A DNA stretch of 64,000 nt, taken from positions 62,001 through 126,000 of IMG/VR virus record IMGVR_UViG_3300031957_002643, one strand, 5' to 3'. Below the pieces are notes generated by a model. The model was not told the origin of the DNA, did not search any database, and saw only the letters and a list, made by a program, of their open reading frames with translations. How positions within the stretch are numbered: position 1 is the first letter of the stretch; every line of letters starts with the position of its first letter. Position numbers and translations under genes: made by a program. Positions 3,578-63,027 of this stretch are shown here, piece by piece.

Positions 3578-4804
3578 TCACATCATAGTACAATCGTGCG
3601 CGGTTTTCACATCACACGCGCGGTCTCTGATATTTTTTGCAGCATTTAAATCTGCATTTTCAGAATGACCACATGAAACACAGTTGAAACTGGATTGGGA
3701 CTTGCGGTTCTCTTTAGCAATATGGCCACAGGCCGAACACTGTTGAGACGTGAACTTTGCTGATACCTCGATAACAGAGCCACCCATAGGTTCTGTCTTG
3801 TATTTTAGCTGTTGTTTAATCGTGTACAAACCGGGCCGCAAAAGTTCACGGTTCAGTCCAGACTTTGCTTTCACGTTCTTTCCCGGTTCTTCAACGGTGC
3901 CTTTTGCCGATTTGGTCATGTTTTTTAACTTCAAATCTTCTACCGCAAAAGTTTTGTTCTTTTTAACCAGTGCAGCCGTGATCTGATGTCGAGATGCCTG
4001 AGTTGCACGTGTTTTGCGCGAATTCAGCTTTCTCTTTTCTACCAAGACTTTCTTGCGTCTATTAGAACCTTTTTTCGCGCGAGACAGCTTGCGTTGTGAC
4101 TGTTTAATACGGGCGTCGAGAACTTCGTCTTTATGGATTTGGTAAACATCACCATCAGATGTCATGATGGTTTTGTTGATACCCATATCAATTCCAATGA
4201 TCTCTTGTGAATGTGGAATCACTGGTTTTGTGACTGTGATTGTTTCAGTCACCGCCAAATGCCATGTTTCTGCTGCCGGGTCATAAACAATACGAGCATT
4301 CGCACCAAGTGAACCTTTGATTTTGGTCCACTTCTTATATTTCACCCATCCTAATTTTGGAATCTTGATACTGTTTTGTCCGAATCTAACATAAACGGTT
4401 TGGCCGCGCGCCTTGCTCACACCATTAATGCGAATATAAATGCCAAATTTATCAAAATACTCTCGTTTGGTAGGATATTTTGCTTTCAATTTGGGATTGA
4501 AGAAATTAGAACGTGCTTGCTCTAGGTCACTCCATGCAGTAAGAATTGAATCTGACGGGGCTTCACGAAGCCATTCGTTGCCATCTTTCTTCTTATATGC
4601 AGTGATGTCAGAAGATTTTAGCGACAGGTATTTGCCCTTACGTTGATCTTCCGGCAAGGGCAAAATCGTATCACGATAATGTTGGTCGTATACATCTAAG
4701 AAATGATTATAGATGTGGCGACATGCGCCTCTCCATTTGAACAATGTTTTTTCTTGTTCGGGAGATGGATACAATGGGAATTTGATACCACGACTGATTT
4801 GCAT
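3578..4804 (-). CDS. tnpB: CRISPR-associated TnpB/Cas12f-like RNA-guided endonuclease (408 aa)
   Basis: N-terminal HTH (KFPLYPSPEQ...GACRHIYN), RuvC-I IGIDMG, RuvC-II AVEDL, zinc finger CSACG/CVSCG, RuvC-III NADLNAAKNI. Confidence 0.93.
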   Translation of the reverse strand: MQISRGIKFPLYPSPEQEKTLFKWRGACRHIYNHFLDVYDQHYRDTILPLPEDQRKGKYLSLKSSDITAYKKKDGNEWLREAPSDSILTAWSDLEQARSNFFNPKLKAKYPTKREYFDKFGIYIRINGVSKARGQTVYVRFGQNSIKIPKLGWVKYKKWTKIKGSLGANARIVYDPAAETWHLAVTETITVTKPVIPHSQEIIGIDMGINKTIMTSDGDVYQIHKDEVLDARIKQSQRKLSRAKKGSNRRKKVLVEKRKLNSRKTRATQASRHQITAALVKKNKTFAVEDLKLKNMTKSAKGTVEEPGKNVKAKSGLNRELLRPGLYTIKQQLKYKTEPMGGSVIEVSAKFTSQQCSACGHIAKENRKSQSSFNCVSCGHSENADLNAAKNIRDRACDVKTAHDCTMM

Positions 4805-24999: not shown

Positions 25000-25533
25000 T
25001 TATATCCCGCCGCCATAAGTCGTTATATTAATGAAATCAAGTAACGCACCACCGTCCGATTCGTTGGTAACATTAATGGTGCCACCGATAGATGGTGTTC
25101 CAGATTGTAACGTATCTGCATAATCTATGCGCAATGTATCATTATTGACGCAACTGACATCCAAATTACCAGAACTTGGTACATTTCCTTGAGAAATTGA
25201 ATTTTTGTATACAGTAGCCGTTCCATTTGTATATGATCCGGCAAATCTGACCGTGATGGTTTGATTGATTCCAGTTACGGTAACTGTATTACCCAACGTG
25301 TCGCCCGGACCAAGGTTATTAAAGTTGATAGAATCTGGGGTGTAATCTGCATTAGAGGCACCATAAAAATCTTCTAATGATATTGCGCCAGACGTAGGAA
25401 CACTATTATTCGCAGTAATATCTGGAACAAGTCCCCCGCCTCGATAATAATCTGTCAAAGATTGTGGTGCTGAACCTCCAAATTCAGCAACCAAATCATT
25501 AATTGAAATTGTGCCACTAGCTTGAAGAGCCAT
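25000..25533 (-). CDS. tail fibre tip or adhesin-associated protein
   Basis: N-terminus MALQASGTISINDLVAEFGG...SLTDYYRGG...SGAISLEDFYG, a type commonly found after S74 fibres. Confidence 0.7.
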   Translation of the reverse strand: MALQASGTISINDLVAEFGGSAPQSLTDYYRGGGLVPDITANNSVPTSGAISLEDFYGASNADYTPDSINFNNLGPGDTLGNTVTVTGINQTITVRFAGSYTNGTATVYKNSISQGNVPSSGNLDVSCVNNDTLRIDYADTLQSGTPSIGGTINVTNESDGGALLDFINITTYGGGI

Positions 25534-28500
25534 TGATTTTCTCCATCAAGTTCTGAACAAGTACTTCAAGCCTTTCTATTTTATTTTCCAATGCTTCACG
25601 TTTTTTCTTTTCTTCATAGAGGGCGGCTACTGCATATTTTCCATAATCAACCGAAAGAATGCCATCCGTTCCCGTTATTACTAATTCCGGTGCAGTATTT
25701 TTAACTTCTTGTGCAATGATACCGATTGAGCGGCCACGTCCGTCCTTCCAATCGAATTCAATAACATTCAATTCATCAATTAGTGAGGGCCTATCGATGA
25801 CTCCAATAATGGTCTTAAGTGTAATATCAGAATTCGCAGTCACGTTACCAGTTGCAGTGAAATTTCCGTTACCATCAAACTTAATATCATATGCCGTACC
25901 ATCATTCGTTGAAAAATGCATTTCCGAACCAGACGATTGTGACCAGATTTTAGATACTGCTGTATCACTAAAGGATATACCACCGCCATACGAGCCTGAC
26001 AAACGCAAAGCAGAGTTAGCATTAACTGTCGGATTGAAAATGGAAGAATCTTGGGCGATTATAAATGATCCATTATCATCAAATGTATACTTCGTAGTGG
26101 TCCCATCGCGGATGTAAAGATTTCCCGCATTCATATCCATATAAGTGTTTGAACCGTTGAAGAAAATCTCAAAGTCATTTCCAGTTCCAAATGAACAAAT
26201 CACACTATCATCGAATTTTAAGGTTCCAGCCGATTTAATTGTACTGGTATCTGATCTTAGGAATTGCGTCGCTTGGATACCATCAACTGTATCTGCATCT
26301 AAGCCGGAACCAGCACCATCATTCCCCGGATGCCAAACAACATTCCCGCCGACCGAAATGGTATTACCAACATATAGCTTACCATCAACAGTGAGTGACA
26401 TCGCTCCTTGTGCATTGGTATGATCAGTATGACCCCACCAGAAACCACGATCAGTATCGTTGTTCATTTGGAAGGTCATCGCATAATCATTATTCAAATA
26501 GCCATAAGTGAAACCTGTCTGCATACCGATTGCATAGTTTCCAGAGGACCATACTCTGATTTTATCTCTACTTGACGTGTTGACCGAAATATATTGATCC
26601 GCAGTCATAGTTCCGGTGGTTGAAATATTACCAGTAAACGCTGCACCAGACAAAATTGCGACCGGAGTACCACTTACACGCGGAGTCACATTAAAATTAA
26701 AATATGATCCATCGTCCGAATAAATTCGATGCGAAGTCCCATCACTAAAGCCGATATATCCTGTTCGAGTACCAGTAGTTGCTGCAAAAAATTCGAGGTA
26801 ACCAGAATTTGAACCATTTGTATTAGTTCCAACGTATCCATTAGTTCCATTCTTAAAACCAACATTCCCGCCGCTAAAGTTCATAGCTCCCGACAAATTG
26901 ATTGTGCTACCAGTCATAGTAATGTCGCCAACACCGGTCAAATTGACATCATTGATATCCACCGCACTGGATGTCAGTGTAAGAATTGGTGCTGACGTTA
27001 AAATGCCACCGGTACCAATAACGAACGTTGAACTATCGGCAGCACCGATTGACCAATCAGCGCCGTTGTTCCCAACATCAAAAGTAATAGTCGGATCGCC
27101 CGCCCCTCCATGAATTTCAATAGATGTATCCGCACCAATGTTTCGTCTAAATAGAGCAAGACTACCACCACCACCACCACCATTAACGGTCAATCCTGTT
27201 CCAGAAGTAGCTGTATCATCAACTTGTAAAACAGAAGCGGCATTAGAGAACGCGCCATCGCCACCAACACGCAACCAGCCATTAATATCTGATCTCGGGT
27301 TTTTAGCCAAATCAGCAATAATCACGATAGGGCGCAAATTAGATGGTGTTATATCTAACGAGGTTTTAAGATCGAGATCAATACCGTACAAGGTTCCAAT
27401 AGTTGAACCAACCTCAACATCTGGATAACCTTCAAAAATTCTAGCAGTCGTAACGGTTCCGGCATTAACATCTAATAGTCCTCTTATACTATATGCATTT
27501 GATAATGTTTGATCAACATCTCCCGTAACTAATGCACTGGCAAAAATACCATATAGACTGTTTGCCTGACTGCCAGCATTATCCAATCTGGCGCGGGCAT
27601 ATACTCCATACGCGCTAATTGCTTCTGCACCGGCCCCACCAAATACATAACTTTCAAAATATCCAGCATATATGTTATCAGTATAACCAGAAGAAACGTC
27701 AGCTCTACCATAAACGCCGATTGGTCGTAACTGATATGTATTTGCTGAGGTTGAACCATCCGTCAAATCAGAATAACCATAAACACCAATTCTGTTTCTA
27801 TCAGCGGCTAAATTATCGGTTCCAAATGTTGAATTGGTGTATCCATAAACTGCTGATTGATCTGAATCAGCCGACCTATCGGCTTCATAATATGTATAAA
27901 CTACATGATCGGCGCTTACATTACTGGCACCATTACCAAACTGTGCATAGTCAAAATTATAAATATTGTGTTGGTTACCAGTAATATCGGCATTGGCAAC
28001 AATATTACCATCAGGACTTAATGTTAAATTACCGCCACTGCCGGAAATGGTACCAATAGTACCATTTCCGGCAGCATAAATTTCATTATTATCAAATGCC
28101 CAGCCAATTGTACTATTACCAATTCGAACCCAACCATTGTTCCATGTTGATCCAGCAATAGTTCCAACACCAGTAGGAACTTCAAATTCAGTATTATCTG
28201 CAAGTACCAACTTGTTGGTTGATAGCTGATATTGAATTTTTGTATTGCCCTGTGATTGAATAGAAATATTTGAATTGTCACTGTTATTGATTACTAATCC
28301 AGAACCACTGGCGGTTATTGATGCTCGTGCCCCAGTATCACCAATAGTAAATCCATTAGTGGTCGTATTGAAATAATCGCTGGCAAATGATACGCCGGTT
28401 TCCATGGTTAACGCAGAACTGCTCAATACCATTTTATCGGCATTTGATGCCCGGAATGTCATGTCTCTGTCGGTGTTAGAATATATAAAACCACCATCAT

Positions 28501-31273
28501 AGACTTGGCCCGTATCACCAAAATACAATGATGCGGTGCCTGCTGTGCCACCAAGAAGAAGACCACCAGCATTACCGCCAGAGTTATTGTCTTGAATAAC
28601 AAAATCGAATGGCGTTAATGATGGTGTTCCTTCGCCTGAATTTACAGTTACGTGCAATGGTGCACCCGGTGCTGCTCCGATTCCTAAAGCATCAGCAGTC
28701 AATCCATCATTATCAAAGGAACTTACAACAGAACCATTATAAAATACTTGAACTCCGCCCGATCCGTCATTTATTCTAAAACCATTATCCTGTGTTTTAG
28801 AAAGCATAAACCAGTCTGAAGTAGTTCCATCTTCATATATTGAAAGACGGTCTGAATATGTGTTGGTGCTGGTATTAAAGTCTAAAGAAGTTCCACCAGC
28901 AATGACTGAACGTGTCGGGTATTGTGAAACATTACCAAGTTTTATAGGAACATGTGCTTCGTGAAATAAAATTTCCCCAAGCTGGAAATAATCACCCGCA
29001 CCGGCACCAAATGTTGTGAAAAATCTTACTTGAAAACTTCCATTCGCATATGGAGAAAGATCAATTGACGCCGTTCTCCAACTACCAGCAAGTGCAACAG
29101 TGGCCGCTGCGTCATCGCCGTAATCTCTCCACACTTCTATCCAATTAGTACCATCGTAAACTTCACAGACTGCTTGTTCAGTAATGCTATCATTTGAATA
29201 ATTTCGATACGCAAATGTCATGAAGATGCGGGTTTGACTATATGGATCGTCATCATCAATAGATACATCTGGATCAAAAACACGATATGACCCAATATCA
29301 ACAACCGGAGAAGTAACACGAGTGTCCAATCGGATTTGAATGCCTTTGTCTGTTTGCCATTCAATTAAAGTAGACGGAGTAACCCCATCTAGTTGAAAAT
29401 TGGTACCGCCATTTCTTTCATCAGCCGCCCATTCACCAAGATCACCTGTAATGTTTCCCGGCGATGTCGAGAGACCATCTGTGTTATTTGGAAAGCTTTC
29501 GGAATAAATTATACGTCCAACATTTAAGCCTTTAGCTTTGAAACTTAAATCAGTTTCGACATGACCAAGAGATTTGACCCTGAGACCAGTAAAGTTATCA
29601 CCGCTGTAATCGGCGCGAAGGTCCATAATATAGCGTGCTGCTGCCCTATCGGGATCACGCACTTCAATATGAGTAATCCCATTAGTTGTTGATGGTTCGA
29701 TTAATAATTGCGGATTACCACCTGTATTCATTAAAATCTGAGAACCTTGAACATCAAGTGTTCCAATAATATCAACGCCCGCAGAATCCACATTTATGAT
29801 TTGTGCACTGGAAACCGAAATACCGAAATTGCCAGCAGAAGGCCAATATACACCAGTGCCTTGGTCGGCATTCGCGTTCAATGCCGGACTTGCAGCGCTA
29901 CCATTTGCAAAACGAACTTCAGCGGTTCCGCTCAGTTCAAGGCGAGATGTAGTGATATCAAAAACTTCAGTTCCATTTAAATCAATATTGATTCTGTCAT
30001 CAGCAATAGAATATATTCTAGAGTCTTTATCAGCATCAAGATAAATGCTACCACCGTTTGTGTACAAATTAGCATTTCTATCAATTTCTAATAAGTTTGC
30101 AGTAAAGACACCCGCATCTGTTCTGGACTGTAGTACAAATGTTTCTCCATTTGCAGTTATTGTCCAAAGTTTTTCATCAACGCCCGCGTCTGTTTCGCGA
30201 ATATAAATCTGATTACCAGTACCTTCAAAATAATTGGTGCCGGTCCAAGTATTATTACTTGTAAGTCTACCAGTCGTGTTATCAACATATGCCTTAATGG
30301 ATTGTTGTGTAGCGAGAGCAAGTGAGGAGTTAGATACAAGATTATCTTCATCCAAAATCGCATCAACTCCGATTCCTGATGTGAGAGACAGTTTGCCAGA
30401 GGAGTCAACATTGAGAGCATCCGTTGCATCTACCGTAACAGTAAGTGCATTGCTAGTTTGAATCTTCCAAGGACTATTAACATCGGCCCCATCAGGTTGT
30501 TGAAAGTTAAGACTTCTGGACGCAGCAGAAATTAAAGAAAGTACAGAAACATTTGTCGTGGTATTTGTTGCTGTAATCGTACCAGTGCCCGTTACGTCAA
30601 CACTGGTAAGGCCGACATTCAATACTTCTGTTAAGCTCGAACCTGTATAAAATTTAAACGGTCTGGCATTGCTTTCAGATTCAAAAATAAAACCGGAATT
30701 GTTTTGTGCAATTCTGGTATTATATCCAGAGGTCACATCTTCAACATCGATACGAATTCGACCAACGGACCCACCATCATCATTTGAAATAATGATACCT
30801 TGACCAGACAGATTCCCCAACCCATGAGAATTGTCACCAACAGCAAGACTGCCGATTAACACATTATTACCAGCTTCATCAATGACAAACCGATTTACGT
30901 CACCGCCACCATCGTTCGTGGTAAACGTAGCTTGTCCTTGTGATGTAACAGCAAGCCATGGAATACTGTTGACATCAATTTCCAAAGAATTATCGACAGC
31001 CGTGATTTGAACTGCGGTAGAATTCGTTGTGTTGCCAAGAGTAAAGGTATTTGAATTATCAGTGTCAACAATCGTCAACTCACCATAGATATCAATACCC
31101 TGTGTGTAAACATGTGCGAACCGTTTGGTTGCGGAACCCAATGAGTAAGTGCCATCAACATCAGGAATGAAATCTGAATTGATTTGAGTATCCAAAGTGA
31201 TATCATTTTTGAAGCGGGTTGTTCCCGTTACAACTAGATCACCGAAAATTATTGTATCTGTTAATTTAGCCAT
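25517..31273 (-). CDS. long tail fibre (1918 aa) with C-terminal intramolecular chaperone (peptidase S74-like)
   Basis: Beta-rich G/S/T/N composition, GSGLDAD motif, C-terminal SDITLK...GIIAQEV...SVDYG plus coiled coil. Confidence 0.88.
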   Translation of the reverse strand: MAKLTDTIIFGDLVVTGTTRFKNDITLDTQINSDFIPDVDGTYSLGSATKRFAHVYTQGIDIYGELTIVDTDNSNTFTLGNTTNSTAVQITAVDNSLEIDVNSIPWLAVTSQGQATFTTNDGGGDVNRFVIDEAGNNVLIGSLAVGDNSHGLGNLSGQGIIISNDDGGSVGRIRIDVEDVTSGYNTRIAQNNSGFIFESESNARPFKFYTGSSLTEVLNVGLTSVDVTGTGTITATNTTTNVSVLSLISAASRSLNFQQPDGADVNSPWKIQTSNALTVTVDATDALNVDSSGKLSLTSGIGVDAILDEDNLVSNSSLALATQQSIKAYVDNTTGRLTSNNTWTGTNYFEGTGNQIYIRETDAGVDEKLWTITANGETFVLQSRTDAGVFTANLLEIDRNANLYTNGGSIYLDADKDSRIYSIADDRINIDLNGTEVFDITTSRLELSGTAEVRFANGSAASPALNANADQGTGVYWPSAGNFGISVSSAQIINVDSAGVDIIGTLDVQGSQILMNTGGNPQLLIEPSTTNGITHIEVRDPDRAAARYIMDLRADYSGDNFTGLRVKSLGHVETDLSFKAKGLNVGRIIYSESFPNNTDGLSTSPGNITGDLGEWAADERNGGTNFQLDGVTPSTLIEWQTDKGIQIRLDTRVTSPVVDIGSYRVFDPDVSIDDDDPYSQTRIFMTFAYRNYSNDSITEQAVCEVYDGTNWIEVWRDYGDDAAATVALAGSWRTASIDLSPYANGSFQVRFFTTFGAGAGDYFQLGEILFHEAHVPIKLGNVSQYPTRSVIAGGTSLDFNTSTNTYSDRLSIYEDGTTSDWFMLSKTQDNGFRINDGSGGVQVFYNGSVVSSFDNDGLTADALGIGAAPGAPLHVTVNSGEGTPSLTPFDFVIQDNNSGGNAGGLLLGGTAGTASLYFGDTGQVYDGGFIYSNTDRDMTFRASNADKMVLSSSALTMETGVSFASDYFNTTTNGFTIGDTGARASITASGSGLVINNSDNSNISIQSQGNTKIQYQLSTNKLVLADNTEFEVPTGVGTIAGSTWNNGWVRIGNSTIGWAFDNNEIYAAGNGTIGTISGSGGNLTLSPDGNIVANADITGNQHNIYNFDYAQFGNGASNVSADHVVYTYYEADRSADSDQSAVYGYTNSTFGTDNLAADRNRIGVYGYSDLTDGSTSANTYQLRPIGVYGRADVSSGYTDNIYAGYFESYVFGGAGAEAISAYGVYARARLDNAGSQANSLYGIFASALVTGDVDQTLSNAYSIRGLLDVNAGTVTTARIFEGYPDVEVGSTIGTLYGIDLDLKTSLDITPSNLRPIVIIADLAKNPRSDINGWLRVGGDGAFSNAASVLQVDDTATSGTGLTVNGGGGGGSLALFRRNIGADTSIEIHGGAGDPTITFDVGNNGADWSIGAADSSTFVIGTGGILTSAPILTLTSSAVDINDVNLTGVGDITMTGSTINLSGAMNFSGGNVGFKNGTNGYVGTNTNGSNSGYLEFFAATTGTRTGYIGFSDGTSHRIYSDDGSYFNFNVTPRVSGTPVAILSGAAFTGNISTTGTMTADQYISVNTSSRDKIRVWSSGNYAIGMQTGFTYGYLNNDYAMTFQMNNDTDRGFWWGHTDHTNAQGAMSLTVDGKLYVGNTISVGGNVVWHPGNDGAGSGLDADTVDGIQATQFLRSDTSTIKSAGTLKFDDSVICSFGTGNDFEIFFNGSNTYMDMNAGNLYIRDGTTTKYTFDDNGSFIIAQDSSIFNPTVNANSALRLSGSYGGGISFSDTAVSKIWSQSSGSEMHFSTNDGTAYDIKFDGNGNFTATGNVTANSDITLKTIIGVIDRPSLIDELNVIEFDWKDGRGRSIGIIAQEVKNTAPELVITGTDGILSVDYGKYAVAALYEEKKKREALENKIERLEVLVQNLMEKINGSSS

Positions 31274-39900: not shown

Positions 39901-42900
39901 TCATTTCACCTTTTTGTATTCCACCTCTAATTTGTCTACATCTTTTCTCTCTGCAAACACATGATAGAAGAAATCCCAATTCTTGATTAGATTCTTGCTC
40001 TTTATATAGACCCTATTGTTTTCGATCTTCTCGACATAAATGTCTTGTGCCTTGCCCATTGGTGTTAGTGAAACAGTGATACTATCCGCATCAACTAGTT
40101 CGATCCAATAATCTGGAAGCTCGATTACATGTGACTTTGAGCGACCACGAACATAGACGCCATTTTCTGGTCCTTCCAATGAACCATATCTTAATTTGTA
40201 GTTCTCTTTGGTCGGGTGATCAATAACGAATGATTTTTGAGTTGCATTCAGTGCGCCCGTGATCGTAATACCGGTGCTGTCTACTTCTGCAATGTTCGTG
40301 CTATTAATGATTAGATACAAGGTGTTATCTGCACCTTGGCCAATACCTGTGACCGGATTTGACCTATTCGGAACAAGTGTTGGATTGGTTGATGATGGTG
40401 TCTCGTTAAGAAGTGCCGGGCCTTTTGTTGCCTGCATTTCGAAGCCAGCGGCGGACAAAATTGCCACCGAAGAACCATCAATAGCCATTCCTAAATTGCC
40501 TGTTGCGGCATAAAAACCAGTATCAGGATGATCCTGTAGCGAAACCCCCGGAGCAGCAGCCGATCCATCAGATGCTAGAATTTGACCAGCAACACCAATT
40601 TTTCCAATGAACCAAGAATTCTCTTGAACTTCAAGATTACCAGTCTTGGTCACTACGTTACTATATGATCCGGCACTGCCACGGATTTCGAGAACGTCAG
40701 TATTTGTCCAATATCCGGTTCTCGTGTCATCACCAGTATTATCATACGTGAATACTGCCGGATCATCGATCATACCAATAGTTGAACCAAACCTTGGTGA
40801 GATAGAGTAATTCGTGATGATGGTGTCAGTTATAATGTTGGCACCCTCAATACCATCAACCGTATCGGCATCTATGCCATTGCCGGAACCTTCGTCTCCA
40901 ACAGTTAGAATTCTACTGCTGGAAACAAATGCTTGACCCGTTGAGGTATTCACTTCAAAAATAGAAGTATCGGCTGAATCAGTTACTTTGAATAATGTAT
41001 CTGCTGCATTCTTTACAAGTATATTTCCATTATTTTGAATTAGAAGATCGTCGCCCGTTGTTCTCTTGATGAAGGCATCGGTTGCTGGAACAGAGCTTTT
41101 GAACACCAAGCTCACATCGTTTGCAAAATTCTTGTTTGCTGTTACATCATTACCAGTGGCATCCAATTGGAAATATCGAGCATCATTGTAGTCTCTATTG
41201 CCAACATGGGTCCCGGCAGACGGGTTCGTTGATGCTGTGATCGCTGCTGTGAATGAAGCTGTACCAGTGACATTCAATGCACCGCCGATGTCTAGGCGAT
41301 CTTTGAATTCCCAATATCCAAGATCAGCATCATACGTGAAATCGCGAGTAGGCTGATATGTTCCACCATCGTATGGTGTCATTGCAAATCTATGTTCGGC
41401 ATCGTCATGAAGGAAGCGAATTGTCCCCTCATTCGCACCGAAATAAAGGATGACACCCGTATCAATATTTGAAGTAGCATCCGTTCTCACGAATTGGGAT
41501 GCGTGAATACTATCAACCGTGTCAGCATCGATACCATTACCAGAACCTTCGTCATTTGTCGTCAGGATACGATAATAATTTGATCCATCATTTGTGAGAG
41601 ACCAATAATCAGATGTCTCATTCCACAATACTGAAACATTTGCAGATGTACCGCGTTCTACTTCAATACCAGCATCTTGTGATGGCGTGCCAGCTTCGTC
41701 AGAATTCAAGACAATGATGTTGTCGCCAATTTCCACAGTGTTAGAATTGACAGTTGTCGTAGTTCCTTGAACTGTCAAATTACCAGCAACAGTAACCCCT
41801 GTCCCGTTCACAGTGAGTGCAGCAGTTCCATCACTCCTGATGATTGTTTCAGAACGACCAATTTCCAAAACAGTTGCAGCAGTATCACCAGAATTTTCAG
41901 CTTGGATCAATAATTTACCAAGATGATTTCGGTTGATCATATAAGTGTTGTTGTCACCGGAATCATAATAGATGGAGAAATCCGTATCATCACCAAAGCT
42001 CAACTGGTTGTCATCGTAATATGTGTGTGATGCTTCAATTGCTGAAAATGAAATACGACTGACTAGATCAGACCCATCGATCCCATCCAAAGTATCAGCA
42101 TCAATACCATTACCTGATCCATAATCGGCAGTCGTTACAATTCCAAGATCGCTCTTAAGATTTGTGAATGATCTCTTTCTCGCAGTTCCACCTGTTGAAA
42201 AATCTGAAAACAAGAAGAGGTCTTGTACGGTTGCAGCCTGATCCGTGATTTCCGATGGATCAAATGACAGCGTGAAGTTTTGATTTAGTTGTCCAGAACC
42301 GATACTAGCAGCCAAACCGAGACCCGGTGTGATGGTTCTGGTTGACGGAACACTGTTGGTGTTTCTCGCTACCGGTGAAACAACAAGATCAGTAATTGTT
42401 CCTGTTGAAAGATTGGTTGACCACACGTAAACGTAATTCGTTGCGGTTTCATTCACCAAGGATGCTGATGCGAAGAAAATTCTCCACTGATTGGAACCAT
42501 CACCATTGAAAGCTCCAAGGTTAGTTGCTGTGATGGCTGAAGTACCAACTGCAAGATTGACACTCGAACCCATTCCAGTGTGATTGATTAGGATTTCTAC
42601 ACCATCAGCCGTATCACTTTGAACCGGATCGAATGCGAACGAGATTGCACCCGTTACTGTCGTCTGTGTTGGAACCGCATATGAACCACTAAATGATGCA
42701 ATGACCGCATCATTACCTGCTGGACCGGTTGGACCTGTAGCACCGGCAACACCATCACTTCCTGCTGGACCGGTTGGACCGGTTGGGCCTTGAGCACCGT
42801 CATTACCTGCTGGTCCCGTTGGTCCTGTCGCCCCTGTCGCACCATCATCACCGACAATAGAAGTCGCTGCGCCCCACGCGCCTGCGGTCTTAGGTCCATA

Positions 42901-45663
42901 TAGATCATAAGTGTCTGTATCTAAATAGAAATCACCATCCACACCATCAGCAACATCATCTGGTGCGCCAGAACCATTGAGCACGGTTCTACCATCCACA
43001 CCATCATTACCTGCTGGACCAGCAATGCCCTGTGGTCCAATTGGACCGGTTGGACCGGTTGGACCCTCAGCACCGGTTGGACCGGTTGGGCCAGTTGGAC
43101 CCTGAATACCTTGTTCGCCCTGAGCGCCCTGAACTCCTGCTGGACCGGTTGGGCCAGTTGGACCTTGAGCGCCCTGCGGACCAGTTGGACCCTGAATACC
43201 TTGTTCACCCTGAATACCTTGGATGCCTTGAATGCCCTGCGGACCGGTTGGACCGGTTGGTCCTTGGATGCCTTGTTCGCCTTGTGGACCGGTTGGACCG
43301 GTTGGGCCGGTTGGACCCGGAAGTCCTGAAGATGAGACGTTTAGAATTTGAATGGCATCATCAGCATCTTTAAAGTAGATATTGCCATCTTTATAGTTCA
43401 AGAACAGCTCACCATAGGCCAGATCACCAGCCGCAGGCTGAACACCCTGCAAGCCGCTGCTCTTGACGGTAATAAGCATGTCATCACCATCAGCAATCAA
43501 CCCATCAAGTGATAGACTTGCCTGATTGGTAGTTGCCAGATCACCAAGTTCCAATGCAGTTCTAGCATCTGCCGCAGTAGCGGTTCCTGCTAGAGTTCGA
43601 CCAAAAGCTTTCAAGTCATACAAGGCGGCAGTATTAAGTGCAGTGGTGTATATTGCTTTATCGGCGGCAGTTGTAAGCCCGGAAATACTTTGCAGCAATG
43701 CGCTGTATGCTTGAACATCTGAACCAATAGCAACACCAAGATTAGTTCTTGCTGAATTTTTATTAGACAAATCGTCAAGGTTTAATGATGCTGTCAGTTT
43801 TCCTGCAAGAGAATTGGTAATGGTCGTTGCAAAGTTTGGATCATCACCCAACGCAGCAGCAAGTTCATTTAGTGTATCTAATGCAGATGGTGCACCACCT
43901 AACAGATTGGAAATTGCCGTGGAAACAAATGCGGTTGTTGCAAGTTGATCTGTATTAGTACCAGCTAAAGCTGTTGGTGCTTCAGGCTCGCCTGTGAAAA
44001 CGGGAGTATCCAGTCTGGCAATAGAAGATGGAATATCACCATCTACCAATGTTGTACCAGATGATACACGTCCATATGAGTCAACCGCAACTTTGGTATA
44101 TGTTCCCGGTGTACCAATTGTTGGAAGATCGCCTGATTGAAGTGCTGCACCCGCAGTAACAATACCACGGTCGTTAACAGTTACCTTGCCATAGGTGCCA
44201 GCAGAAACGCCAGATGCAGGAAGATCAGAATTTGAAAGCGTTGTCGCGCTCGTTACGATACCTTTGACGTTGACAGTTAACTTTGTGTATGTGCCAGCGG
44301 TGACACCGGAATCTGGAAGTCCTTCATTATCCAACGCCTGACCATCGGTAACACGTCCATATTGGTCAACGGTCAATGAATTATAGGTGCCCGGTGTAAC
44401 AATACTTGGAAGCAGTGTTGCATCGAATGATTGTGCAGCCGTAATGATACCTTTGTCGTTAACAGTGACCGCACCATATGTTCCCGGCGTGACTCCTGAA
44501 ACTGGCAAGTCTGAATTGACAAGCTGTCCCGCACTCACAGCACGACCAGTTGTATCCAATTCGATTTTTGTGTAGGTTCCAGCAGAAAGACCAACAATAG
44601 TTGGGAAATCCGCAGTTTCAAGAGAACTAGTTCCGGTAACAATACCTTTTGAATTGACGACCAGTTTTGCATACGTTCCCGGCGTGACTCCTGAATCTGG
44701 AAGATCAGAATTGATTAAAGTGGTTCCAGCAGTTGCCCTACCATATGTGTCAACAGTGAGCTTGGTATATGTTCCGGCAGAAATTGCTGTTGGCGGCAAG
44801 TCACTGTCTTGAATATTAGCAACGGCAGTAATGATACCTTTATTGTTTACGGTGACTTTAGAATATGTACCCGGTGTAATAGCTTGTGCGGCAATCGCAA
44901 TGTCATAACTTGAACCAGCACCATTATCCAACAGATCGAAGTCAGCAGAAAAATTAATGCTTCTTTCGTTATTGAGCGTTGCGGTATTTCCAATCGTGAG
45001 AACAGGAATATCAATGAACGGATCAGTGATATTTTTGACCCATTCAGTCGTTGGAACAACCCTACTATCTTCACCAGCCGCAGGCGTGTCCGTTAAAATG
45101 AGTGTTGAATCAATACTATCGTCAAAGGTTTTGTTGCCTCTGATAAACTGATCTCCAACAAGTGCGACAAATCCTTCAGTTAAGGCTTCAGCCGGGTCCT
45201 TGTTCACCCAATTGGATGAAAGCGCGTCATAAACAAGAAGTTGCTTATCCCCAAGGGAAGTCAGATTGGTATCCGCAGCATCAGCGATAGATGCGGCTGG
45301 ACCCGCAGGACCGGCTGGACCCTGAATACCTTGTTCACCCTGATCACCCTGATCACCTGTTGGACCCAACAGGCTTGAAATGAAAACCCATTCACCATTC
45401 ACTCGGTAAAAAATTTCACCGGTTGACTTCTTTAGGTAATAATCGTCCTCATTGCCGACATTTGGATCAGGATCGGTATCACCATTGTACCATTTGGATG
45501 CAAGGTATGGATTTTGGGCACGAAGATAAATTGGAGGAAGATCAGGAAATGAAATCTTGGTACCAGCATTTTCGCCATCTCTGATATACTCGATGGTCAT
45601 ATCCTCGATGGAAAATGATGTGGAAGTTGTTCCTAATGTATTCGTTAAACGTGATTTAGTCAT
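39901..45663 (-). CDS. giant tail fibre (1920 aa) with collagen-like and [13 protein letters not shown] repeats
   Basis: Nine GTY-type repeats of about 33 aa, [27 protein letters not shown] tracts, C-terminal KSFVIDHP...GSLEGPE domain. Confidence 0.88.
42720..43320 (-). repeat. collagen-coding tandem repeats (GPTGPT/GIQG)
   Basis: Repeated ggaccggtt 9-mers inside the fibre gene. Confidence 0.9.
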
Positions 45664-62752: not shown

Positions 62753-62856
62753 TTGGAAGTATGGCGTTAGATGATCTTTTGCTTCACGAGCGTCATCCCT
62801 ACTCGTTGATCGGTCTATCATTAGAGTTGATAGGGTTAAGGACGCCATACTTCCAA
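62753..62856. other. structured intergenic element closed by a perfect 15-bp inverted repeat
   Basis: TTGGAAGTATGGCGT / ACGCCATACTTCCAA enclosing two internal hairpins. Confidence 0.6.
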
Positions 62857-62871
62857 AGGTTAATATAACGC

Positions 62872-62993
62872 AAAAACGCGAAAGGGCAACCCGTTAGGAC
62901 TGCCCTTTCGAGGTCCGTTCTGTTGCTAAGTGGACAAATCTCCGATCAAGCTGCATGAGCTAGATCAAGGCTTTCATTATCGTTGCCAGTTGA
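62872..62993 (-). ncRNA. tmRNA-like tag-reading-frame RNA without a tRNA-like domain
   Basis: TCAACT|GGC AAC GAT AAT...GCA GCT TGA = GNDNESLDLAHAA* (62987-62946), then GTCC-ACTTAGCAACAGAAC-GGAC and a terminator. Confidence 0.7.
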
Positions 62994-62996
62994 TAG

Positions 62997-63027
62997 TATT
63001 TATATGACACCATAATTCTTATGTCAA
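62997..63027 (-). promoter_or_regulatory. overlapping sigma70 and late promoter
   Basis: TTGACA-17nt-TATAAATA. Confidence 0.75.

Follow-up and report, generated by a model that had tools for sequence, protein, structure and literature searches.

A free-standing tmRNA tag-template RNA gene, predicted from sequence, in a marine T4-like phage

The window analyzed here is a 64,000-nt stretch (bases 62001-126000) of IMGVR_UViG_3300031957_002643, a 335,552-bp contig from seawater metagenomes that carries T4-type portal, terminase, gp32, UvsX and helicase genes. Near its end, two divergent genes, a 269-aa ORF on the plus strand from 63062 and a 294-aa ORF on the minus strand from 62741, enclose an intergenic region that holds a tmRNA-like tag module on the minus strand at 62872-63027. 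A predicted promoter consists of a -35 hexamer TTGACA (63027-63022), a 17-nt spacer and a -10 hexamer TATAAA (63004-62999). Eleven nucleotides downstream of the -10 hexamer, GGC (62987-62985) opens a 13-codon frame, GNDNESLDLAHAA, which is closed by a TGA stop codon (62948-62946), while an in-frame TAA lies five codons upstream (63002-63000) and no start codon occurs in between. From the promoter geometry, a 5' end and a very short leader can be inferred at 62994-62988, with an A at position -4 and AACU preceding GGC. The 3' half of the frame folds into a helix-5-like hairpin (62966-62944) that holds the stop codon and is followed by a PK2-like pseudoknot (62942-62912) of the order CGGAGAUUU-GUCC-A-CUU-A-GCAACAGAA-C-GGAC, in which S1 is formed by GAG/CUU and S2 by GUCC/GGAC. 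The latter stem encloses the sequence ACTTAGCAACAGAAC, and the GCAACAGAA loop is found at 62918-62926. An intrinsic terminator with a 14-bp stem, including eight G-C pairs, and a T-run at 62910-62872 ends the unit. Thus, all sequence features listed in the original prediction, which described a stand-alone tmRNA tag module with its own promoter and terminator but no tRNA-like domain (TLD), are present. The DNA is assembled identically in two runs, and the strict promoter pattern TTGACA-N17-TATAWA occurs twice in the window against 0.03 expected occurrences.

Within the window, ARAGORN and Rfam detect no acceptor stem or T-arm near the module but only two tRNA-Arg genes 60 kb away. Two different tRNA-Arg(TCT) genes lie 230 nt apart on the minus strand (2328-2404 and 2631-2707), and phage Melnitz is likewise reported to carry two tRNA-Arg(TCT) versions (PMC9004378). 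The divergent flanking genes leave no room for further RNA domains upstream of the module. However, a complete permuted tmRNA gene with the tag ANDNDFAVEARIAA, which the original prediction could not take into account, is located at window-equivalent positions 64936-65276 on the same strand, 1.9 kb upstream of the module and 0.9 kb beyond the window end. ARAGORN identifies the gene and Rfam scores it as alpha_tmRNA with 110 bits. A convergent pair of small ORFs and the 269-aa gene lie between this tmRNA and the module. Neither the 269-aa and 294-aa neighboring proteins nor the genes between the tmRNA and the module have an informative family or atlas match. Elsewhere in the window, a 408-aa ORF (3578-4804, minus strand) with HTH_OrfB_IS605, OrfB_IS605 and Cas12f1-like TNB domains represents a TnpB/IS605-family element inside a lytic jumbo phage genome, and two very large minus-strand ORFs (25517-31273 and 39901-45663) are of nearly equal size (1,918 and 1,920 aa).

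Directly after the module lies an adjacent but separate unit (62889-62753, minus strand), which has not been shown to belong to it. Its promoter has the -35 hexamer TTGCCC inside the terminator of the module and the -10 hexamer TATATT, and it precedes a structured RNA of about 100 nt (62753-62856). This RNA has a 12-15-bp closing stem that differs in sequence in every lineage, a conserved hairpin ACGAGU/GCUCGU, a covarying pseudoknot (GGAUGA/UCAUCU, GACGG/CCGUC, UGCAA/UUGCA) and an invariant CUCGUGAAGCARAAG, and the outer stem and pseudoknot covary in four lineages. No Rfam family matches at E<=10, and a pattern search returned only coding-sequence coincidences besides the two known contigs. 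The element, which also occurs in the related loci introduced below (L002:2885-2990, L125:1840-1945 and L132:925-1025 on the minus strand), may be a new structured RNA and can be compared with the glutamine riboswitch reported after the Melnitz tmRNA (PMC9004378).

First, we asked whether the module is related to tmRNA. At gathering scores, ARAGORN and Rfam find nothing at the site. Below threshold, Rfam aligns only the frame of the module to tmRNA_permuted (RF04321) at 20.3 bits against a threshold of 47, with the whole tRNA-like part of the model deleted, while RF01849 gives no hit at E<=10. The 3' end of the RF01849 (alpha_tmRNA) consensus, ...GGAGgcACCuGGCAACAGAAacCucC, confirms the GCAACAGAA motif that the original prediction had assigned to the coding piece of alphaproteobacterial tmRNA. 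Furthermore, we collected 17 genuine alpha-type tmRNA tails, from 12 nt before the resume codon to the end of PK2, from viral contigs in which ARAGORN or Rfam shows a complete gene. A profile HMM built from these tails, with no module included, scores the window module at 30 bits (E 2.8e-8), compared to 1.3e-9 for an independent complete tmRNA used as positive control, whereas the next best hit, in the window and anywhere, has an E-value of 1.1. The training tails were retrieved with a pattern taken from the module's own motifs (AAYGAYAAYGA ... GCAACAGAA), which favors those 20 positions and inflates the score somewhat, but the matches at CGGAG, CUU and GC-GC-stop are independent of it. In the genuine tails, RNAalifold recovers PK2 stem 1 with covariation (GGG/CCU, GAG/CUU and CGG/CCG), and the module has GAG/CUU.

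The same promoter-plus-tail unit is found at the same locus in two distant relatives. In the L125-L127 lineage (loci from five sequencing runs), in which the neighboring protein is only 40% identical, TTGACA-17-TATATA is followed after 11 nt by GGC and the frame GNDNESLGYEQVA, the same PK2 and a terminator. In L132 (= L138), with a 52% identical neighbor, the unit carries the frame DNDNLNLVQASA and an equivalent terminator, and a complete alpha_tmRNA lies about 6 kb upstream on the same strand. The profile of genuine tails detects these copies with E-values of 9.3e-6 and 0.0044, respectively, although the L125 copy gives no Rfam tmRNA hit at E<=10. In contrast, the closest relative by neighbor-protein identity (the L002/L130/L133 phage, 49-55% identical) lacks the module at this locus but retains the adjacent structured RNA and has a complete permuted tmRNA 7.6 kb away. 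Hence, the module is dispensable. In L130 (13728-16452), the large terminase gene of this phage appears split into a 352-aa N-terminal ORF and a 561-aa ORF with a faint GIY-YIG hit, suggesting a homing-endonuclease insertion.

Comparison of the window copy with the two syntenic relatives shows that the -35 hexamer is invariant and the -10 hexamer is 67-83% identical, while the promoter spacer is only 24% identical, which corresponds to the random level. The first 22 nt of the frame are 100% identical to L125 and 82% to L132, helix 5 is 50-59% identical and PK2 69-81%. On the structure we specified, 90.7% of cells are paired, against 31-41% when the partners are slid. Six of 18 pairs changed on both sides, three of them among the nine pairs of helix 5 and three in S2, and at most 2 of 500 shuffles reach the observed values, which is supportive rather than conclusive given only three sequences. 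The stop codon lies in the 3' strand of helix 5 in all three lineages, and the length difference inside helix 5 is exactly 3 nt, so the stop stays in frame. Moreover, three samples of the L125 lineage differ in the promoter spacer and in the flanks but not in the transcribed module.

A scan of IMG/VR for a TTGACA promoter placed just before AAYGAYAAY, followed by the tail profile, revealed two more lineages with analogous units. In L224/L307, a T4-like contig of 51.6 kb, a complete permuted tmRNA (tag VANDNDIVDFALAA) is followed within about 50 nt by TTGACA-17-TATATA, 10 nt and a second tail, DNDNCTYGDLRLTA, with PK2, and then by tRNA-like sequence (L224:6031-6467 and L307:7091-7519, minus strand). 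As no obvious strong terminator lies between them, read-through could give a tmRNA with two tandem templates. In L237, TTGACA-17-TATAAA is followed after 13 nt by DNDNVLLVQETVAQAA and PK2, and no tmRNA was found in the 11.4-kb locus. Only five copies in three phage groups are known, two of which were found with a search that required the promoter. The -10 hexamers of the other four modules are TATATA, CATATA, TATATA and TATAAA, and all lie 10-13 nt before the resume-like codon. All five modules have an A at -4, as do 16 of 17 genuine tmRNAs, a purine 7-8 nt after the -10 hexamer, so that the predicted leader is 3-5 nt, GGC or GAC as the first codon, and an open frame of 12-16 codons that ends in Ala, with the stop just before PK2. 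A possible further orphan frame in L299 (2271-2389, minus strand, on a contig of 561 kb), ANDNCSSPMTLVA, has a hairpin holding the stop and an ACAGAA motif but a poor -10 hexamer and no significant profile hit, and remains unconfirmed, while L233 and L296 are ordinary complete tmRNAs.

Across 310 loci (2.67 Mb), the only tail hits without an upstream hit to our TLD profile were the modules above the threshold (window, L125-L127, L224 and L307), one contig-end truncation and one gene that ARAGORN calls complete. The orphan state is therefore exceptional and not a detection artifact. ARAGORN alone missed 13 of 31 permuted tmRNAs, all of which were checked with Rfam (alpha_tmRNA scores of 75-175 bits in loci L005, L018, L025, L040, L060, L064, L073, L081, L113, L114 and L118), and ARAGORN-negative results for two-piece tmRNA hence need a covariance-model check. 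ARAGORN and Rfam thresholds miss the orphan units entirely, so phage annotations will not show them. BLAST of the module locus and of the L224 and L237 loci against 50,697 GenBank phages gave no useful match. Scans for the exact tag peptide and the invariant PK2 motif found only this contig in IMG/VR and nothing in 185,579 species genomes, no host tmRNA with this tag was identified, and a single metagenome scan returned only the L002 contig.

Taken together, the data suggest a self-standing small-RNA gene of about 115-120 nt that descends from the 3' tail of an alphaproteobacterial-type two-piece tmRNA coding piece, and we are highly confident of this identity. It keeps the A(-4) context, the resume codon, a short tag frame, the helix-5 hairpin holding the stop and PK2 with its GCAACAGAA loop, and an early-type sigma-70 promoter would start the RNA only about 4 nt before the resume-like codon. 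The module equals the whole tail of a two-piece coding piece downstream of PK1. In alpha-type tmRNA this tail is tethered on its 5' side only, and this covalent link is exactly what the module lacks. Without acceptor strands, T-arm, helix 2 or PK1, it would therefore not be expected to enter a ribosome by itself, and SmpB is not expected to bind a molecule without a TLD. Whole-molecule RNAduplex predictions were uninformative, and a search for complementary stretches of 7 nt or more between the module and the complete tmRNA or the neighboring RNA found nothing shared across lineages. A base-paired alternative coding piece is therefore not supported.

We favor, at a probability of roughly 0.45 for identity and mode of action combined, a trans-acting mimic or alternative copy of the template tail that acts at the template-loading step of trans-translation. 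In this inferred scenario, the Ala-charged TLD and SmpB, from the complete phage or host tmRNA, first occupy a stalled ribosome, and the short-leadered tail then competes for the empty mRNA channel. It might either serve as a second tag template, giving a tag whose sequence is unimportant and probably not a strong degron, or block the built-in template. In the absence of transcript data, some role in trans-translation appears only slightly more likely than not, and actual decoding of the frame is doubtful. Features that matter only for decoding, namely A(-4), the open frame, the frame-preserving indel, the stop in helix 5 and the Ala last codon, are retained while the helix-5 sequence has turned over completely, and by our own rough arithmetic the probability that four further copies keep an uninterrupted, in-frame stop at that place by chance is of order 1e-3. 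On the other hand, the C-terminal half of the tag is not conserved between lineages (HAA, QVA, ASA, LTA and QAA instead of the conserved ...RIAA), whereas the tag of the complete tmRNA is identical between the window phage and the L132 phage, with only two synonymous changes, and no known mechanism delivers an untethered template to the ribosome. A further-reaching and unlikely possibility is that trans-translation can use a template that is neither covalently joined nor base-paired to the TLD. A free RNA would then dock through PK2 and slip its resume codon into the vacant A site of a ribosome being rescued, allowing phages to re-program the tag in a three-component trans-translation, or, in the extreme version, fill the empty mRNA channel of nonstop ribosomes without any TLD.

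Of the alternatives raised by the original prediction, a swap-in tag template for host tmRNA and a decoy both remain possible, whereas one piece of an unusually split phage tmRNA is not needed to explain the module because the same genome has a complete two-piece tmRNA. A pure decoy that is never decoded but titrates a factor recognizing the tmRNA tail, such as ribosomal protein S1, RNase R, another RNase, or a host toxin or defense nuclease that cuts the template region, would protect or modulate the real tmRNAs and is the strongest rival, though an unlikely one. The conserved positions are the same nucleotides that are conserved in all alpha-type tmRNA tails, synonymous sites are frozen too, which points to RNA-level selection, and the tag peptide is not conserved. 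A decoy, however, does not need the open frame, the frame-preserving indel, the Ala last codon or the fixed short leader, and no specific binding partner of the MLD-PK2 tail is established for these hosts. Less likely still is an exapted small RNA or 5' leader unrelated to trans-translation, for example a regulatory sRNA or a promoter-terminator insulator in front of the neighboring structured RNA and early genes. The module always sits in an early-promoter-rich intergenic region next to another small structured RNA, its terminator supplies the -35 of the next promoter, and in L237 it lies directly upstream of a protein gene without a strong terminator. Yet this explains neither why exactly the tmRNA-specific determinants (A-4, NDN codons, stop in helix 5, PK2 loop) stay fixed while everything else drifts nor why the units occur in phages that carry complete tmRNAs.

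Template-less tmRNAs exist (PMC11915505), and a template-less partner with a TLD and PK1 might lie in the host or in the about 265 kb of the genome outside the approximately 71 kb examined. Nevertheless, a multi-piece tmRNA is improbable, as the genome already has a complete tmRNA with its own template, the module has no 5' extension that could pair with a partner, and no complementarity conserved across lineages was found. A non-functional remnant left by an integrating element or illegitimate recombination is the least likely reading and is already largely refuted. Such fragments are common next to tmRNA genes in bacteria and prophages (PMC4131195, PMC4383910, PMC9004378), and the L224 arrangement superficially looks like one. 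However, no integrase families are found among the neighbors, these are lytic T4-like genomes, the alignment to the phage's own tmRNA tail shows 71 identical columns of 174 and no identity block, a canonical promoter sits at the same distance in five copies, and functional blocks are conserved with covarying stems while the spacer is scrambled.

tmRNA is defined by the union of a tRNA-like and an mRNA-like part, and half-molecules that keep only the tRNA-like part are known. A conserved, promoter-driven half that keeps only the template was not described in any paper we found in a non-exhaustive literature search. If the RNA is made and acts on ribosome rescue, it would show that phages tune trans-translation with more than a complete tmRNA and provide a natural system to ask whether the template must be physically tethered to the TLD. 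With the coding piece of alphaproteobacterial two-piece tmRNA (RF01849/RF04321), the module shares the A(-4)/resume-codon context, an xNDN... tag frame ending in Ala, the stop codon inside helix 5 and an H-type PK2 with the conserved GGCAACAGAA loop at the 3' end, but it lacks the 5' acceptor strand, helix 2, PK1 and an acceptor piece in front of it, and its resume codon is GGC or GAC rather than GCN. The complete two-piece tmRNA genes of marine T4-like phages (Melnitz and pelagimyophages; 53 of 133 unique phage tmRNAs in one survey were two-piece; PMC9004378) share the habitat, the phage type and an alpha-type tmRNA lineage, and in Melnitz the tmRNA 3' end is also followed by a structured RNA, but those are complete, chargeable tmRNAs. 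The TLD-only or CDS-less tmRNAs (mycobacteriophage DS6A, jakobid mitochondria, some plastids, and 81 'no CDS' sequences, 72 permuted and 9 standard; PMC4131195, PMC11915505) are half-tmRNAs as well, and that of DS6A is proposed to inhibit tmRNA by titrating SmpB. They represent, however, the exact opposite half, as they keep the TLD and lose the template. Finally, displaced tmRNA gene fragments at genomic-island or prophage ends (Islander; PMC4383910) are also partial 3' copies of a tmRNA gene lying near a complete one, whereas the module has no integrase or identity block, has its own predicted promoter, is conserved in synteny across divergent lytic phages and shows compensatory changes.
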